Shown one piece after another: positions 16,015 to 45,800 of a DNA stretch of 64,000 bases. The stretch comes from Eutreptiella sp. 'Long Island Sound 2002' (lineage: Eukaryota; Protista; Euglenida). The translations under genes were made by a program, and so were the position numbers. Position 1 is the first letter of the stretch, and each line of letters starts with the position of its first letter. The stretch covers positions 1,674,001-1,738,000 of the forward strand of contig OZ038378.1 of NCBI GenBank assembly GCA_964036045.1, given 5' to 3'. The notes beneath the pieces are model-generated. The model had not been told where the DNA came from. It made no database searches and saw nothing but the letters and a program-made list of their open reading frames with translations.

Positions 16015-17495
16015 GCCTTTGTGGAACTATTTTTTGTTGAGTACCCCGGGATGTATAGTGACGAATGGACCCTTGGTGCAGCGACTTACCCCTCACAGAA
16101 ATCAGCGATGTCACTGAGACGTCACACCAAGGTGCTCGCTGATGGAGAGGGAAAACTTGGATGAACCCAAGTTGAAGTGAGTCCAGAGCACCATTCGTCT
16201 ATTGTAACATTATCGGATATTTTTGTACACCATATCCCCTAACATACACCCCTGAAGTTGCTTCCCATGTTGATTTTGTGTCAGTGATACACACTCCCAC
16301 TCACTGATCGGAATGCTTGAATCAATGCAATTGATGGAATATGAATGACCAACTTCCCAACATATTCTTTGTTGTACCCTGGTCTTCTTCCTTTTGCATT
16401 GTTGCATTGTGTGATGCCTCGCGCAGCGGATCGTATACTCCGCATTCACCACGAGGCTCATCCTATTGTTCTCCGACATGAATTTTCCGACAAGAATTCC
16501 CCACTTCAGGAGCTCCAAGACACCCGTAAGCTCTCTCTGTGAACCGTTTGTAGGGTTTTCATTGATTGGAACGACAACTACTGCACTTCAATGAGTGTGT
16601 TTGTTGTGTAGGTAAGTGCATGTACTTCCTTACATGTGGGTGGTCATTGGTTACCGCTCGTGTGCACGGGTACAAAATAAGGAACGCTGGCAACGTCTGC
16701 TCACTGCCGTAGCACCCGTGTTGTTCCTTGTTGGTAGAGTCTTTGCTCTTTGTTTTTTGTACCTAACTCACCACTTGCCCTACCATGTCTTCGTCCCCTC
16801 ACAAATGAAGCATGGTCCTTCCTCCTTGCTCGGTTGTGCACTCGTTTCTGGTTATGTTGTTTCTGCTACTACCCGGGGTATTTTTTGTGTGTGCGGCCTT
16901 TGTGGTACTATTTTTTGTTGAGTACCCCGGGATGTATAGTGACGAATGGACCCTTGGTGCAGCGACTTACCCCTCACAGAAATCAGCGATGTCACTGAGA
17001 CGTCACACCAAGGTGCTCGCTGATGGAGAGGGAAAACTTGGATGAACCCAAGTTGAAGTGAGTCCAGAGCACCATTCGTCTATTGTAACATTATCGGATA
17101 TTTTTGTACACCACATCCCCTAACATACACCCCTGAAGTTGCTTCCCATGTTGATTTTGTGTCAGTGATACACACTCCCACTCACTGATCGGAATGCTTG
17201 AATCAATGCAATTGATGGAATATGAATGACCAACTTCCCAACATATTCTTTGTTGTACCCTGGTCTTCTTCCTTTTGCATTGTTGCATTGTGTGTGTATG
17301 TGTGTGTGTGTGTGTGACCGCGGGCTTGCCCAAGGCTGCCGTTGAGGTGCTGGCCCTGTTTCTCCTCACACAGAAAGGTGCCTAGTGCAGGCGGGACATG
17401 CTACTGTTTTTGTTCTGCTTTGCACCTGACGAGATCTAGTACATCCAGACCAGTCTTTTCTGTGCTCTGTTTGTCGCCGAAGTGTGTGTGTGTGT

Positions 17496-17555
<60 letters not shown>

Positions 17556-20500
17556 CCGGTTCGTGTCACGATCTCAGTGGTGTGCCATTGTGCCCTCAGG
17601 ATCCTCTCCCCGTGACAAGTAGAAGAGCCTGGAAAATGGCTGTTTCAGCGTTGTAGCATTTTGCCAATCAAGTGCAGGGCAAGGCCCCGCATTTTGAGTC
17701 CATTATTCCCAAAGGCCTGTTTCCGGACCAGATGGACACTGTTGCACAGCGTACGGAAATCTGTGGATGAGATCTCGGATCACTTTTATGTAAGGATTGT
17801 AGATAAAGGGGCAGGAGAGTTGTGGGGTTTCTGCAAGAACGGGCTTTGGAATGAAACTGAGGAATTCTTGCGGGCAGAAAAATACATCACAGTTTTCTCC
17901 ACCCCTGAGTTATTTCGGAAACATGGGCCCTTATCCGGGAGTAGGGTTGGAATGCCAACACCACAGCACGTTTGTGTGTTCTGTATATTATTGGTAAAGA
18001 CAGAGCCTGAACAAGGGCCGTTGGCTCTGGCTCTGGCCAATTGCCGCTGCATACCCAGAGCCACAGATTTACAAGCGTGACTTGCGTATGGCAGCTAGAG
18101 CCTATATGTGTTTTTTTTGAAACACCTAATTCAGGATAATACCTAACAACTTCCAGGTACTCGGGTAAATGATGTTGCGGCTTGGCTACAGTGGGCAAAT
18201 CGTGAAAAGATGTGTTCCATTACCGAGCTTGACTGCAAGAAGCAGTTCAATGAAATTCAGCCAACGTAGATTGGTGAAAACATGTCTGAGGGTATTGCAT
18301 TTCTTACCAAAAGGAGGCGGTGGAGGATGGGTGAAATCACCTGGAGCGTGCATCACAACGTAATAGCGTTAGATATGCCAGGACTAGGCACGAACAAGAA
18401 CTTCTGGTACATCACTCATCATGAACTATCCAGGTATGTTTCCTTGGAGCTGGAAAAAAATAACAAGTGTTGGCCGGTGGGGAAGCTTTGGAGTCGTGAC
18501 CGCTGCATCCCAATGGGAGGTAGCTTTTCAGCACAACATGCAGACTTACACTCGATATGGGGATCATACCGGGGCATACAAGAATTCAGATGTCTGGGGG
18601 CGCTGAACCTGTCATCTGAAGGGAATGTTTTGTGGACGGGGCGTTGGAAGATCGCCCTCTGTCAGTCCAGGGATAACATTTTAATGGCCAGCGATGCAGA
18701 CCAGGCAGACTGTAAAGAGGTTGTGGCGCTGGTCAAATCAGTACTGGAACCAGTTGAATGTTGCTGTGTGGACAACCGGGGTTTGTGCCAGGGCCGCTGC
18801 ATGGGTCCAGTTATCTGCTGTATGGGGTTTTGCATAGCGATGGGAGGGGGTTCACGAGGAATTGACCACGCGCAACCTGCAGCCCTTAAGGATGACTGGT
18901 CTCTCCGGCTGGGACCGTCCCTGATGAGCCCCAAACATGCGTACAAGGGATACCTTGGTGGAATTTTCAAAGGGGCGCTAGCAAACGGGCGCCCATGGGT
19001 GAGTACACGGGCGGGGCAAATTCTCAGTCCCTTGGCGTGGCTACAAACAGCCCTGCTGTCAGGGCACAGCCAAGGTGATAGTATGAGGGCTATGCATCGG
19101 GCACTGCATGGGGCATTTGCGGCAGAACCACATTTTTTGCCTGCAACGCTGAAGGCCGTGTATACAGCGTCCCGCTCTCTCCCAAGTTTGAAGTGTGTCG
19201 CCATTAGGAATTTGCAGGTGTGGTTGAAGCAGTGGGCGCATTGGGAGGGGGGTAGATACACGGCCTGGGCACCGAGGGGATGTGCTGACCTGAGGGCGTA
19301 CGAAGCAGGATGGAATTCAGACTGGGAGGCGCTTGACAGGTTGCGCTAGCAGAGCTGCCACGGGGCAGGCTGTGTGTGTGTGTCCACCCGGTGACAGTTG
19401 GTACGAACAGGTTCTCAATTTCCGAATCGTCCGGTTATAACACAGGGATGTTGCTTGCTGCACTTGGCGGGGTCAGTGCTGGGGGACAGGACGGACGGCA
19501 CACAGGGGCTGTTTCTGTTTCCTGCCTACAGGGGTGGACACGACACGTGGACCGCCCCACCCGTTGGTGCCTCCTGGTGATGTACCTGGTGTACTACAGA
19601 AAGGCACCTAGCTGACATGCTTTTCAACTCCTTCTTCTCATGATCCATTCGGCCTGACGAGATTCGTAAGCGACCAGTGCTGTGCTCTGCTTGTCACGTC
19701 TGTTCGTCTCGCTTCAATCATGTGTGTGTGTGTGTGTGTGTGTGTGCACCCAGCACAGGCTGTACTATTTTGGGCTGTCATGAACACACACTCCTCCATG
19801 GATTTTTCTTGGTCTGTTGGTTAGCCGAACCAATACGTGGTGCAGGAGAGGGCACAGGGAGACGTCTGTATCACACTGAATCCACTGTCCAGGACTGCAG
19901 TTTGTCATCTTCTATCAACAGACTGAAAGACATCCAGGGCCGCCTCTGCGGCTCCTGAGGAGTTTTTCTTTCACTGCTTTTCTTGCTCTGTTCTTGTTTG
20001 TGGTTCTCGTCGTGTGTGTGTGTGTGTGTGTGGGTGTGTGTGTGTGGGTGTGGGTGTGTGGGTGTGGGTGGGTGGTTGGGTGGGTGGGGGTGGGGGTTCG
20101 GGTCAAACCGGTCAGATTTTGGACAGCACTTGGAGCGCAGGCTGGTGCTTGGTTCTGGTCGGACCTGTGATCTATCTCTGCGGTCAGGCCTGAACTCCCC
20201 CTCCATCACCACAGCAGGAGATACACTCCACACTCCACAAAACACGCACACACCCTCACTCCCCGTTTGGCGAATTGCCAAGCGACCCGGAGCCATTCCT
20301 CAAAGCTGCTGGCATCCGGCCCTACCCGCCTCGCAGGGGACCGGCGGATTCGGGGTCGTGCACAAGGGCCGCATCAAGCATTCCAACGACACGATTGCGG
20401 TCAAGATCTGCCTCTGCCAAGACTCCGACATGGTGGCGTCCTTCAAGCGCGAGGTCAAGATGCTGAGCTCGCTGCGCCACGAGCACATCGTGCTGTTCCG

Positions 20501-23500
20501 CGGGGCCTGCGTCGACCTCCCGCACCTGTGCATCGTGACGGAGCTGATGAGCCAGGGCAACCTGTACAACCTGCTGCACGACGAGGACATGGACATGCCG
20601 TGGAAGCTGCGGGTTCGCTGGGTCCGGGACATTGCGCGAGGTTTGCCCAAGCGCGCAGCCGGGGGGCGGGCGGGCTGACCCAGGCTCGCCACTGGCGTCC
20701 GCCACGGCAGACCAGTGTGTTGGTTGGTTTGCCTTCCGTTGTCTTTCTCTTTTGTGAAACCGGTGCATCCCAATGAATGCCAGAGTGCACACCACCTGCA
20801 AGGGCGCCATTGCGACTGGAGGGCTGTGTGTGTGTGTCCACCCGGTGACAGTTGGTACGAACAGGTTCTCAATTTCCGAATCGTCCGGTTATAACACAGG
20901 GATGTTGCTTGCTGCACTTGGCGGGGTCAGTGCTGGGGGACAGGACGGACGGCACACAGGGGCTGTTTCTGTTTCCTGCCTGGGGGGGGCTTGCCTCCGC
21001 TGTTCAGCCGCACTTCAGGCTGCGGCAAGGCTGTCCCGCTGGTGGTGCCCCTGATGGTAGTGCAGCTCCGGCTCCGGAAGGGTCCACTCATGGAGGCCTT
21101 GCTGGAGGCTGGACTTTTTTGTCATCCCCATCTCGGGGTGAGTCCCAGCACAACGTAGTACGTGCGCCGGCTGTCTTATCAGTACAGATCCTCGTTGAGA
21201 GCTTTCCGCGTCGCATTTTTCGTATGCTTCCAGAATACTCAAATGCGTTGGCTCCGCGTTTGTTTTGGGTAAGGGGTTTTCATACGGGATGCGCACGCAC
21301 AGGCTGTGGCTGTGATCCGTCCGAATGCTGGCGGCCGGTGGTGATGTTGCCGTGGTGTGCCGAACATGCTGGAGCACGTTCGTCCCTGACTGCAGCTGCA
21401 CACGCACTGTGCTGCTCATCTGGAATGCCTCCGTGTGTATCCCACGTGGCAAACGCATGCGCACCACTGAGTCCCACACACGACAGCAATGAAGCCACAA
21501 GAACGTTGGCGCAAACCAATCAGAACACTGCAGCAGACATGTGCAGGCGGAGCTCGGTCCAGCCGAGCCATGCATTGTAGAGCAGCTGGTTGCTGCTGAG
21601 TTCTGAATTGGCATATATCGACATACTCATCGACATCGATCCCCCCCCCAAAATTTAGAAGTGGGGGCGGAAGAGGTGGTGGTGGTGGGGGGGGTGCACG
21701 GGGGGGGGTGGATCACACATTCTGTGGTTCATGGTTCTGTGGTTCTGTGGACACTATGTGCCGCAAGTCGACGGGGTCTGCTCATCGTAGACATGGCCGG
21801 CACGGTGTGGACACGGAAAATCCAATCGTAAGTTGAGTTCGCCCCCCTTCACAAAAAGGGACCCGTTTACCCTTGCGGCCTGTCGCGTGCGCCTACTAGA
21901 CACGGTCTGCCACAAGTAGACGCAGTCCGGACACCGTCGTCATGTTGTCGACGAGATGAGTGGTGAGGCGCGCAGCACCGTCCCGCGCGCGAGGCGCGAA
22001 GCGCTGCACTGGAGAAGGGGGCGAGGGGGGCCCTTCCGCCCCTCCCCCGTGCCCCAGAGCCCCCTCCCCTTGTGCTCCGCATCCCCCTCCTCCTGTGCCC
22101 CCTCCTCCTGTGCCCTGTGTTGGTTCCCCAGGAATGAACTACCTGCACACGTTAGTCCCACCCGTGGTCCATCGGGACCTCAAGTCCCCGAATGTTCTGG
22201 TGAACGACTACTACATGATCAAGTTGTGTGATTTTGGGATGTCGCGGACCAAGCAGCGCACCGTGATCCAGACGAAGCAGATGGGTATGCATCCCGTGCG
22301 ACGGACTCTGGCGGGAGCTCTTTGATACCGCCCCCATGCTCCACTCCAGCCCCACTTCATCTGCGGTAACTCTCGCACTGCTTCTGGGACAGGCGGGGGG
22401 GACAGGCGACACCAGCAAGAGCATCGGCCGCAGCGGCCGACAGAAAGCAGCGACCCGACGCAACATGCGAAGGGAAGAACGGGTGACCGTCCAGGGCCCC
22501 GTAAAGGAGCAACAACCAGACGGAATGTCACACAGGGGGGCTTCCCCCTTCGACAACTTTCGCCGTTGCATCCAGCAGCGGCAATGCACAGCAGGACAGG
22601 CCATGGCCAAGCAATTTCTGAACAGACCTGAAGTGAGCCAGCAGCGGAGCCTCTGGCTCTGTCGGCGTAGGAGGTGCCCGGCCAGCACGACACATCAGCA
22701 GAGCACTGGCGGGACCCAGCACCACCAAGCCCACGGTCCATGCTCCATAACATGCTTTCCTTCCTTCCTTCCTCTCGCACTCCCTCTGCCTTAAACCCTG
22801 CTTGCGGCTCCAGTTCTGGGCTCCCGCCCGAGCTCCAGCTGCGGTTGTGGCTCCTGCCCCAAATCCGGCTCTGGCTCTGGCTGATGTTGCCGTTGGTGGT
22901 AGATTTTGAGGGCTGATCTCGGTTGTTCATCCTTGCTGAGGGTCTGTCAGGGACGGTGGGTGAGGGGTCTCTCACAGACCCACAGTTCGCAACACTCCCC
23001 CAACCCCTGTAGACCGAGGGCTGTTGACGGTTGCCGAGGGGTAACGACGGTTGCTCTGGGTTGTTGATGGTTGGCGAGGGGTTTTGGGCGTTGCTGACGT
23101 TCATTACGGGCTCTTCAGGGCTTAAATGAGGTGAGGGTCAACAAGCGCTATGGAAGGCTGTCGAGTATTGTTGGGTTTCTGCGAGATTTATTGCTGTGAG
23201 ACCTATTAGGCAGTCACCCTCTGCCGCGATGAGAATTTCCACGTGTGTTTGTGAACGCGTGGCTGTGCGGGTGGTGTGCACGTAGTGTGAGATCCAAGTT
23301 CACCGCATGTGCTGCATGGTTTGTTGAGTGGTCACTGGCTGATGATGAACATGATGAAGATGGTCGAGAGCTTCCGAAGGTTCCGTCAAGATTGCTCTAC
23401 CACTGTTCAGGGTGGCTGAGGGTTGCAAAGGGCTGTATGCATGGGCCCCAACCAGTGCCAACCAGTACACTCTGCACCGTAAGGTTCACCACATTCACCA

Positions 23501-42800: not shown

Positions 42801-45800
42801 AGGTATTCTTGGGTGAGTATCCCGGCCTGTGCGTGCGTAGTATGCACGCAGTGCCCACGCAGTGCGCACGCAGTGCCCACGCAGTGCGCACGCTGTGCAA
42901 ATACTTGGCCTTGATGCCCACGTGCTGCCCACACTCCGAGGTGGAGATGACGGTGGCAGGCACCCTGTCATCATTTGATCGGGTGTAGGTGACAGTGATG
43001 TCTGCAGAAAGCCATGAAGGAGACATGGGTGAAACTGTAAGGGGACACAGTGCAGTGTGTGCAATGGCAATGGGTGTGGGTGCAGATGTGGCTGTGGATG
43101 CAGGTGTGGATGCAGGTGTGGGTGTGAGTGTGGATGTGGATGTGGGTGCAGATGTGGGTGTGGATGCAGGTGTGGGTGTGAGTATGGGTGTGGGTGTGGG
43201 TGTGGGTGTGGGTGTGGGTGTGGGTGTGGGTGTGGGTGTGGGTGTGGGTGTGGGTGTGGGTGTGGGTGTAGGTATAGGTGTGGGTCTGGGTGTGCATTTA
43301 AGTATGGGCTTGAGTGTGGGTGTGAGTGTGAGTTCAGATGTGGGCGTGGATGCAGGTGTGGTTGTGAGTGTGGGTCTGGGTGTGGGTATGGGTCTGAGTG
43401 TGGGTGTCGGTCTGTGTCTGGGTGTGGGTGTGGGTGCAGATGTGGGTGGCGGATGCGCACATGGGTGTGGGTGTGGATGCGGGTGTGGGTGGGGGTGTAG
43501 GTGCAGGAGCAGGAGCAGGTGTGGGTGTGGTTGTGGATGTCATTTTGAGTTCGAATGTTGGTGTGGGTGTGGGTACGGGGGTGAGTGGAGGTGTGGGTGT
43601 GGGTGTGGGTGTGGGCCTGGTGTGGGTATGGGTGTGGGTGTGGGTGTGGGTGTGGGTGTGGGCCTGGTGTGGTTGTCGGTGTGGGTGTGGATGCTGGTGG
43701 TACCGGCCAAACTTTGAATTTTTGGCAAAATATTTAATTCACAGCCTGGATTCTGGTGATTTCAGTGTGTCCGCAAAAAAAAAATTAACGCAAAAAAATC
43801 AAATAATTATGTATGGCATTCGGGAGCACATTCTTGAAGAAATGTACGCAGATTTAAACGAAATTACTGGGATACATAAACCACTGTGGAGTGTAGTGTC
43901 TTGTGTCAGGGAGGGCAGATTGGTACAATGGTATGTGCGCAGCCTTGAGAAATAAGGTACCTGGGTTCCATCCCAGTTGGACCCAAACTGCTGGCGCTTT
44001 TTTTGGCCATCAGTCCTGTTGTCAAACTGCTGGCAAAAAGACGCAAAAAGAAAAATCTGGCTTGAGCCTGTCCACAAGGTGTGTGTTGTGGGGGGGGGGG
44101 GGAGGGTTTTGCTTGAGCGGAGCGGGAAGGGGGGGAGGGGGGTTAAGGGGGGAGCCCCCGAAGGAACTCTGGGCTATTGCACGTGTGGATAAGAGGCAGT
44201 CAGCACAAAGCGCAGAAAGACAATGGCTCGTCAGTGGACAAGAAGACCATAGGTACCTTTGTGTCACAAACAGTGAGACACGAAGATGCCGGTGGGTTGG
44301 ACAGTGGCGTATGCAAAGCAGTGACAATGCAGCGGCACGTAGCAAACCACCACCATGCAATGGCCACCGGACTTGTCTATCAATGAACCGTTTCACATAC
44401 ACAGGAAAAGCAGGCGCCCCCTCTCCCCGAGGATCAAGCCCCGATTGGATTGGAGTAGATGGGTCCAGCAGGGGTGTGAGCGACGATAGTATCGGAAAAT
44501 CGTACCGGGCAAACCGCGAACTTTTGTAGAACTTGAATTTTTGCGTTTGGAGATCGGAATTAATATTTAGCAAAAAAAAATGTTTTTGTCCAAAAAGACT
44601 GAAAGGATATTTTTTTGTGCGGTTTTTTTGGTAAATAGGCATTTTGCGGCACCCAATTTAACCCTAGCAAAGGCTATATTTAATTGAATTTCTGCGATTT
44701 ATTTGGCCATCAACAGACATGACACCAGTGACCATGCCAGTGTTGAAAGGTGAACCCCAACGGCAATGTCCTTACCCCAGTCAGGAGGTCAGGGAGCTGA
44801 ATGGTTGGAAGGACATCTGATGGACCTTTTGGAGCGGACATGGATCAAACTGGGATTGCAGTCAAGGTCGTGCGAAGGCAGGCGCGGCCGGCGCACAGTG
44901 GCGGGTCCACACCTGACCTTTGGAGGTCCTGCTGGACACCTCCCCCCCTGCCCCCCGCTGTTTGCGCGCCTGGGGAGCTGCGGGGCACTCCACCATGGCA
45001 GAGGGTTTGCGGTCCACACTGAAGATGATTCCCGTGTGGAGCCCCAGAAACGGTGGGCCAACGCAGTGGGTCGTCGTGAGTGGCGTGAGGTCGATGGACG
45101 CTGCCAACTGCCTGAGGAGCAGCAACATGTGAGGGCTTTGCCGCCCCCCCCCCCCCTCCTCCGCAATGAAACGTTGGCAGTGGACAATCAAGGCCGGGGG
45201 GTGGCAGGCGCGGCTGTAGTCTAATGTGGAGTTTGCCCCCTGACCCGATCGCCGCCCCCTCCCTCCCACGCCCTCCCACAGCACCCCACGTTTTCCAGGA
45301 CAAGTGGCACGACGCAGTGGCGCAGGTCCCCGCCCTCCCGACCGATCTCGGTGCACAACTCGCGGCCGCGAAGGCGCAGCTCCCGGAGGCCGCGCAGGGC
45401 CTGGCGGACCGCGTGCCGGCGGATGTCTGGACGCGGGTGCAGGCCGCCGCCGGGGCGCTGCCCGACTACGGCGCGCCGACGTATGTGGGGCTGGGTGTCC
45501 TCGCCCTGACCCTTGCGGTCGTGGTGGCCAGAGGGCGCGGCAAGCCCAAGGGGGCGATGGCCAGCACCGCGGGCCTCCAGGTGCACCACACCGCCTCCCC
45601 TTGCCGGCCTTGCCCCCCCTCCCCCTCTGTGTTTTGGTCTAACTGGACGGTCCCATACTCCCATGTACTGTCTCATTGAGGCTAGAGGTTGTAGCCGACA
45701 AAACACGGCTTACTGAAGGGAACAACACTGTGAGGTGCGACAGCCTGTACATACACCAGAGCTCATGATGAACACTGTCTATACTCAGTGGAACTGCCGA

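Follow-up and report, generated by a model that had tools for sequence, protein, structure and literature searches.

A type II-ordered hammerhead module, with a spliced-leader acceptor where a helix II strand would lie, at the end of putative Penelope-like retroelements in a euglenid genome

The window analyzed here, a 64,000-nt stretch of contig OZ038378.1 (positions 1,674,001 to 1,738,000 of the forward strand) from the euglenid Eutreptiella sp. 'Long Island Sound 2002', holds at 17552..19720 on the plus strand a 5′-truncated copy of a putative Penelope-like retroelement (element B), which consists of a partial open reading frame (ORF), a 3′ untranslated region (UTR), a hammerhead-type RNA module, and a tail, and which is flanked by (GT)n tracts at ~17483-17550 and 19721-19747. 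Judged from its sequence, the segment at 19597-19720 is the 3′-terminal module of this old, truncated element. Its parts, all on the plus strand, begin with an acceptor for spliced-leader (SL) trans-splicing, that is, a 3′ splice site, at 19577..19599 that ends in UACAG|, of which the CAG occupies 19597-19599, the final G (19599) being G12 of the hammerhead numbering and the preceding A standing at position 11.1. The next block (19600..19610) comprises A13, A14, and A15.1 (AAA, 19600-02), the stem III tract GGCACC (19603-08), U16.1 (19609), and A17 (19610), with the predicted cut between 19610 and 19611. A helix I hairpin with a 33-nt loop follows at 19611..19653, where GCUGA (19611-15) pairs with UCGGC (19649-53) and position 1.3 carries U rather than the consensus C, giving a U-G wobble. 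C3 to A9 (CUGACGA, 19654-60) together with G10.1 (19661) then fill 19654..19661, and a 59-nt tail (19662..19720) holding a conserved CCAGUGC block runs up to the (GT)n target, which reads (TG)n from 19721.

The hammerhead core set (C3-U4-G5-A6-N7-G8-A9, G12-A13-A14, an A15.1-U16.1 pair, and an H17 that is not G) is complete at 19599-19610 plus 19654-19660. All copies keep one order of blocks, GAAA - stem III - cut site - stem I hairpin - CUGANGA, and the termini of the RNA lie in stem II, which is the type II permutation; the topology is not that of type I, as helix I is the closed hairpin and helix II the open one. An initial annotation of this stretch had already recognized a hammerhead core in the order GAAA - III - UA - I - CUGANGA, and the bases are as it described them. 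A second core copy lies at 17371-17432, with GGUGCC as stem III and GUGCA/UGCAC as helix I, and the motif AAAGGNNCCTA occurs three times in the window where 0.4 occurrences are expected.

Genome-wide, the module is abundant and its core strongly conserved. The pattern CAGAAAGGNNCCTA-N25-55-CTGANGA was matched 2,481 times in the 2.28-Gb source genome and not once in a reversed control, and the shorter pattern AAAGGCGCCTAG gave 3,590 matches compared with 45 in the control. Across the 85 distinct copies used for core statistics, CUGA-N-GA was invariant except at N7 (C 71, U 12, A 2), the core position that a working hammerhead leaves free, while AAA, U16.1, and A17 never varied and the base after CUGANGA was G in 81 copies, such that G10.1 is kept. 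The covariation alignment (A2) comprised 73 distinct cores, in which the three junction-proximal pairs of helix I were 88-99% paired with several pair types each: GC 53, UA 17, and CG 2 for pair 1.1-2.1; CG 37, UA 22, UG 8, and GC 4 for pair 1.2-2.2; and CG 31, GC 27, GU 4, and UG 2 for pair 1.3-2.3. The helix I covariation score of 0.375 was reached by none of 500 shuffles (0.138) and fell to 0.015-0.094 when the partner strand was slid, such that the compensatory variation first suspected from the two helix I sequences of the window holds between families at large.

Stem III is a palindrome with the consensus GGCGCC in 55 of the 73 cores, and its central pair reads CG 55, UG 5, UA 4, and GC 1; because the variants GGUACC and GGGCCC change both sides of the centre, self-complementarity is preserved. 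The 8-nt self-complementary tract AGGCGCCU forms a self-duplex of -16.9 kcal/mol and can be a helix only between two RNAs; the GGCGCC stem would be a dimer-type stem III as in Penelope-like elements. The module is real, abundant, and selected, of hammerhead type and in type II order, with a putative dimer-type stem III, and stands at a retroelement end.

The two copies in the window are both decayed in stem III. The GGCACC of the 19599 copy yields a self-duplex of only -6.7 kcal/mol, its palindrome being broken by a G-to-A change at 19606, and at 17379 and 19606 nearly all contigs from other copies carry C and G, respectively. The exact complementarity of GGCACC and GGTGCC, to which the initial annotation had drawn attention, is on that account decay and not design: the two tracts read as two CpG-transition products of GGCGCC, and a designed heterodimer between the two window copies was rejected. 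Separately, in the family of the 19599 copy an upstream GGUGCCU (19566-19572) can pair with the stem III tract AGGCGCC (19602-19608); this pairing is present in the minimum-energy fold, is conserved in loci L012 and L018, and in unspliced RNA would, by this model, mask the dimerisation palindrome and enclose the acceptor. Another abundant element family (at positions ~300-420 of loci L058, L059, L060, L064, L076, L077, and L082) shares AAAGGCGCCTA, followed by GGGCCGGTCGCTCCGGTCC-GTGATCAG, lacks CTGANGA, and ends in CACGTGTCACCGCACGGGGGG; some of its copies are immediately preceded by a complete spliced leader together with ACTTTGGTG or ACTTTTTGCG. Hence, the palindromic motif is used beyond the hammerhead families.

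What the genomic sequence does not offer is the G10.1-C11.1 pair that closes helix II. All 52 unspliced copies have A at position 11.1, as a caveat in the initial annotation had correctly stated for the genomic sequence, and the bases before G12 follow the consensus U[CA]CU[GA]CAG regardless of the sequence after CUGANGA. This consensus has the marks of an acceptor: the pyrimidine fraction is 0.69 at -23..-4 before CAG| compared with 0.51 further upstream (p = 2e-7), and the 20 nt before CAG| contain four AG dinucleotides in 48 copies as opposed to 57 in an equally long control stretch. Sequence properties of this kind identify the stretch as a 3′ splice site together with its AG-exclusion zone. 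The genome also encodes the leader in quantity, the 1,696 matches to TATTTTTTTTCGGTA (6 in the control) amounting to ~1,700 SL RNA genes, by which the host reads as a Euglena, a point that the initial annotation had missed. The SL RNA loci read ACACTTTCTGAGTGTCTATTTTTTTTCG|GTA with small variants, matching the 3′ end of the Euglena SL as published (PMC4778363, PMC2663770).

The junction TTTTCG|AAAGGNNCCTA is present in 256 genomic copies compared with 9 in the control. Thirty SL-fused copies were inspected, and nearly all, from many families, are built as (GT)n, leader (22-28 nt), module, and (GT)n, which identifies them as full-length retrocopies of trans-spliced RNAs; the family of the 19599 copy contributes 13 SL-fused copies beside 297 of unspliced form. 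These copies are direct evidence, from DNA, that the acceptor is used in vivo. Retrocopies that carry a spliced leader are known for dinoflagellate genes, where likewise a leader fixed in genomic DNA records the reverse transcription of a trans-spliced RNA; unlike those, the leader here joins the terminal module of a retroelement, inside a ribozyme core. In 21 of 21 SL-fused copies position 11.1 is C (...UUUUCG|AAAGG): splicing swaps ...CAG for ...UCG, and the RNA then reads canonical C11.1-G12-A13-A14, with a C11.1 that can pair with G10.1. The odd A11.1 and the missing helix II strand are thus accounted for by CAG| being a used SL acceptor, and while the hammerhead reading of the initial annotation stands, its view of A11.1 as part of a non-canonical helix II does not, as the acceptor that this base marks had been missed.

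We therefore favor, at a probability of roughly 55%, a conditional, dimer-dependent hammerhead that would be incomplete in unspliced RNA, at best completed on leader-bearing RNA, and predicted to cut there. The stem III palindrome (A)GGCGCC(U) could form a real helix only through pairing of two RNAs, as in the minimal hammerheads of animal Penelope-like elements. Helix II has no encoded 5′ strand; a working 3′ splice acceptor stands in its place, whose AG gives 'A11.1-G12', and SL trans-splicing replaces ...YACAG by ...UUUUUUUUCG, which brings in the canonical C11.1-G12 and sets leader sequence across from the bases that follow CUGAYGA. The expected spliced junction is UUUUUUUUCG|AAAGGCGCCUA, and the cut would fall 11 nt behind the leader, with a predicted 37-nt leader fragment ending ...GGCGCCUA>p. 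Both the functioning of the leader as helix II and the occurrence of cutting we infer from sequence. In a more specific form, which we put forward tentatively and at well below even odds, the leader would donate C11.1, G12, and the 5′ strand of helix II, and only leader-capped, GGCGCC-paired dimers would cut themselves, making the module a self-decapping switch between translatable RNA and uncapped template.

Several results weigh against this proposal. Beside the core the leader offers a U tract, and the downstream strand starts with GGAA, GGAU, GAAU, GAUU, GGUG, GCUG, etc., leaving 1-4 weak pairs; nearest-neighbour thermodynamics predicted no core-adjacent helix II for any family; and the probability of the 10.1-11.1 pair was ~0 in constrained partition functions with the leader, with a shuffled leader, and with the unspliced upstream sequence alike, such that thermodynamics neither supports nor separates the models. 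Complementarity to the leader is absent from the family of the 19599 copy (tail z = -0.04, not significant), from the short GCC families, and from the GGUACC family, and the 19597-19720 copy is, besides its decay, a member of a family without clear leader complementarity. Rfam models Hammerhead_1, _II, _3, HH9, and HH10 matched neither the window nor an intact element of the same genome (L039) nor any of 20 loci including SL-fused copies, whether the gathering score or E <= 10 was applied, a silence that says little because the same models also miss the complete cis hammerhead of L039. Among the contigs listed from an estuary metatranscriptome, the sole RNA run with the module, none was SL-joined; these contigs run upstream as unspliced or other-copy sequence, and the runs X2-X4 behave like DNA. 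The SL-fused retrocopies are themselves uncleaved molecules, and cutting would hence be at most partial. Finally, taking the start positions of 5′-truncated retrocopies relative to (GT)n as a proxy for cleavage, only 2-3 of ~30 copies in the TTGG family start at the cut site, and none of 11 in the family of the 19599 copy (GCCG) starts at G1.1.

One alternative, which we hold to be doubtful, is that the module is a non-cutting hammerhead relic, descended from a complete L039-like type II ribozyme and kept for its acceptor and leader cap, for GGCGCC dimerisation, and for recognition of hairpin and tail by the reverse transcriptase (RT). A relic would fit a module that forms no helix II in cis nor, for most families, with the leader, that is found in hundreds of uncleaved SL-fused retrocopies, that lacks a pile at the cut site in two of three tested families, and on which Rfam is silent. 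It fits poorly with core bases that stayed fixed, N7 alone varying, while helices, loops, and flanks diverged freely, with covariation at the junction pair 1.1-2.1, and with the retrocopy 5′ ends that, in the GCC[U/A]C families, pile up precisely where the cut is predicted.

In those GCC[U/A]C families, ~11 independent loci start exactly at G1.1 compared with ~5 spread over 16 upstream positions, and a few more loci have 2-8 stray bases before G1.1; across families, the pile roughly tracks the number of SL-fused copies. These starts are at most suggestive of cleavage in some families. An explanation without a ribozyme, which we consider unlikely, would have RT stall at the intermolecular GGCGCC duplex or would invoke 1-nt microhomology with (GT)n. 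The pile does abut the stem III duplex, its first base G does continue the GT repeat, and microhomology clearly shapes other junctions, such as nine starts at (TG)CAG in the TTGG family that look like its product. Yet the GCCG family shares both the local sequence CCUA|GCC and stem III and has no start at G1.1, such that neither process explains the pile easily, and the other G positions in the 16-nt window gather only 0-2 starts each. Several copies (C7:2048063, C7:12470001, C7:12829689, C7:13301913, C7:14044303, and C7:15337129) begin with (GT)n-CAAAACAA-GCCTCAAAACAATG, in which the start at G1.1 follows 8 nt duplicated from within helix I, as though RT had come to the 5′ end of an RNA at the cut site and then jumped.

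Where leader complementarity does occur, it is strong and lies away from the core. In the TTGG/CTGG families, and in some of the GTGC/GCGC families, a block (ACACUCAG and relatives) can pair with the leader's 5′ half over up to 16 bp and at up to -21 kcal/mol, with duplex z-scores of -2 to -5.9 in the TTGG, GTGC, and GCGC branches. The leader helix is significant in 8 of 62 family representatives, the family of the 19599 copy not among them, and leader-tail pairing appears in the unconstrained minimum-energy fold of the spliced RNA for the strong-block families and for the family of the 17373 copy. As the block sits 8-14 nt from the core without adjoining it and leaves a U-rich gap, it could instead act as a tether, capturing free SL RNA by base pairing and bringing it to the acceptor close by, a trans-splicing enhancer and not a helix II. 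Such a tether, consistent with the position of the block and with its pairing to the 5′ half of the leader exon, needs no hammerhead; block-bearing families are nevertheless not richer in SL-fused copies (TTGG/CTGG ~4 of 30, blockless GCC-short ~15 of 30, at similar copy shares), and we regard the tether as improbable and do not favor it. We also considered that the two U-rich strands might form a triple helix or a poly(A) clamp, and dropped the idea, as nothing supported it. As to the C that predominates at N7, a fold of the spliced RNA, UUUUCG/CGAGGA, pairs G12 with C7 and C11.1 with G8, and this register-shifted, non-catalytic fold might, on modelling grounds, be a reason for the preference.

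Helix II in cis was evaluated by RNAduplex per copy, by alifold on the family, and by an own-versus-other-family permutation, none of which gave support: flanks paired no better within their own family than with those of other families (-6.70 versus -6.89 kcal/mol; 1425 of 2000 permutations as good), which leaves without support the distal helix II of the initial annotation, drawn between GACCAGT/CTGTG and CTGG/YACA. A complete cis type II hammerhead, with helix II formed across a large internal loop by the bases upstream of CAGAAA and the conserved downstream blocks, is accordingly very improbable even though individual copies can draw 5-7 bp (e.g., GUACUG with CAGUGC), given that the downstream CCAGUGCC block is retained alongside any upstream sequence, that the upstream UGYACUR-CAG is the acceptor consensus, that own-copy pairings are no better than cross-family ones, and that SL-fused copies are without the upstream strand altogether. 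By alifold, the tail segment UCGUCUCG can pair with the CUGACGAG strand in the family of the 19599 copy, a pairing that L019 lacks. The tail sequence UUCGUCUCG (19704-19712) is complementary to the catalytic strand GACGAGA of CUGACGAGA (19654-19662), also in L010, L012, L018, L057, and L065, and this pairing could, as modelled, be an inactive alternative fold.

A complete cis version does exist in the same genome. Both terminal repeats of L039 carry the type II hammerhead CUGGCUUGAC-GAAA-GAC...GUC-UA|UGGGC...GCCCG-CUGACGA-GUCUUGCCAG, and its helix II appears in the minimum-free-energy fold. The type II permutation is therefore at home in the source genome, and the palindromic family looks to be derived from an L039-like complete hammerhead.

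The element that bears the module could be placed only in part. In element B, the module begins ~250 nt after the stop of a C-terminal ORF part of 355 codons (18282..19349, plus strand), which has no Pfam match and is homologous (33-69% identical) to the ORF ends that directly precede this module across numerous diverged families (seen in L010, L012, L026, L043, L041, and L011). Several of these homologues match the C-terminal third of the 1,459-codon ORF of L039, while the link of element B to the RT part of L039 is weak. Ahead of the homologous region, the L039 ORF has a GIY-YIG match at residues 574-669 (E = 9e-4, below the Pfam cut-off), and by language-model comparison its neighbours are TERT and HTH/RVT_1 proteins of rotifers and algae. 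Searches of Pfam and PDB returned no RT match for the ORFs, L039 having no RVT_1 match and PDB giving no match at all, and the Penelope-like assignment is on this account weakly based. From these sequence features an endonuclease-first Penelope-like element is plausible; of the earlier placement, the position of the module behind a conserved ORF end is confirmed and the RT identity is only weakly shown.

Upstream of element B, and sharing its (GT)n tract, lies a solo 5′-truncated module of the GUGCAGG family (element A, 17317..17482, plus strand; equal to L001), whose parts are an acceptor (17354-17373), AAAGGTGCCTA (17374-17384), helix I (17385-17425), CUGACGA (17426-17432), and a tail (17433-17482); a partly SL-complementary block in the tail (17437-17449) pairs with the SL in the free-energy minimum of SL-spliced L001. 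The two window copies had been taken for repeats of one element, and we rejected a reading of them as its two terminal repeats: they belong to different families and each is bounded by (GT)n. A third copy, on the minus strand at 44225..44260, belongs to a compact GGUACC family and reads AAAGGUACCUA-UGGUCUUCUUGUCCA-CUGACGA with CAC in place of CAG before it; it ends in a G/C run, not in (GT)n, and this compact family, ending in G runs, is the only one not to end in (GT)n. Most copies are dispersed singles, and one tandem array was found, in L040 (1408-1990, minus strand), where four identical modules stand head to tail at 192-196-nt spacing with no (GT)n between them, a retrozyme-like arrangement.

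Some further features adjoin the module of element B. A conserved candidate 3′-UTR hairpin read from the sequences, GGGGUGGAC..GUGGACCGCCCC (19531..19559, plus strand), lies ~40-70 nt upstream of the acceptor; the hairpin (GGGGUGGAC...GGACCGCCCC) stands at the same place in L012, L018, L019, L016, and L024, and its inner stem is CACG/CGUG in some families and CAGA/UCUG in others, a difference that points to a further structured RNA element in the 3′ UTR. Immediately 3′ of element B, an open frame at 19983-20678 (plus strand) encodes a protein kinase domain (Pfam PK_Tyr_Ser-Thr, E = 2e-19) and is probably a host gene exon. As for occurrence elsewhere (runs X1 and X5), an RNA run labelled 'estuary metagenome' contains a 151-nt contig identical to window 18866-19016, and one third of the words of the stretch occur in a run that bears the label of another organism (B); the same or a very close Euglena was hence present in those samples.

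To our knowledge, all hammerheads so far described from Penelope-like elements are type I, and their hosts are animals and a few plants. The published minimal hammerheads of these elements (Cervera & de la Pena 2014, PMC4209133; Lunse, Weinberg & Breaker 2017, as cited in PMC10085705) resemble the module in their location in a terminal repeat or 3′ region, in a short palindromic stem III that needs two RNAs, and in their thousands of copies. They differ in being type I, with helix I open and helix II a local hairpin, whereas the module here has helix I closed, has its RNA termini in helix II, leaves the 5′ strand of helix II unencoded, and resides in a euglenid. Type II hammerheads (permutation 'GSC' in PMC10085705; Rfam Hammerhead_II), which are mostly bacterial, phage, or metagenomic, share the block order and the position of the RNA termini in stem II, with L039 as a complete cis version; unlike them, the palindromic module neither encodes stem II nor forms stem III as a hairpin, has a stem I loop of 30-50 nt, and gives no Rfam match.

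For endonuclease-first Penelope-like elements, Craig et al. 2021 (PMC8557442) reported no canonical hammerhead. The same study describes, in its Methods, 'HHR_core / HHR_half_core' motifs in the 3′ UTRs of Naiad and Chlamys, with CUGANGA and a GAAA 35-50 nt away 'on either side' that did not fit hammerhead descriptors, in elements that are likewise endonuclease-first and insert into microsatellites. Those half cores were left unexplained there and are compared here by description; in the present genome, the arrangement with GAAA upstream comes with covariation, a palindromic stem III, and a splice-acceptor explanation. A possible functional parallel is the HDV-like ribozyme at the 5′ end of the non-LTR element L1Tc of Trypanosoma cruzi (PMC3383444), also in a euglenozoan host with mRNA trans-splicing, where a cut near the ribozyme's own 5′ edge frees the element RNA from upstream transcript and the ribozyme is kept. 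L1TcRz is of another ribozyme class, complete in cis, and its cutting has been demonstrated, whereas the module here is known from sequence. Our literature search found no paper joining Euglena with hammerheads or Penelope-like elements.

The finding places thousands of permuted hammerhead copies in a protist genome, in which the missing strand coincides to the base with a demonstrably used trans-splice acceptor. If the leader completes the ribozyme, self-cleavage would be coupled to mRNA capping, a principle not known for any ribozyme, and the module would be the first case of a host RNA-processing step completing the catalytic core of a ribozyme; it would also offer a direct handle on the unsolved role of hammerheads in Penelope-like elements. 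If the leader does not complete it, the families would show a complete cis type II hammerhead, as in L039, eroding into a dimerisation and splice-acceptor module. Either way, Euglena retroelements exploit SL trans-splicing.

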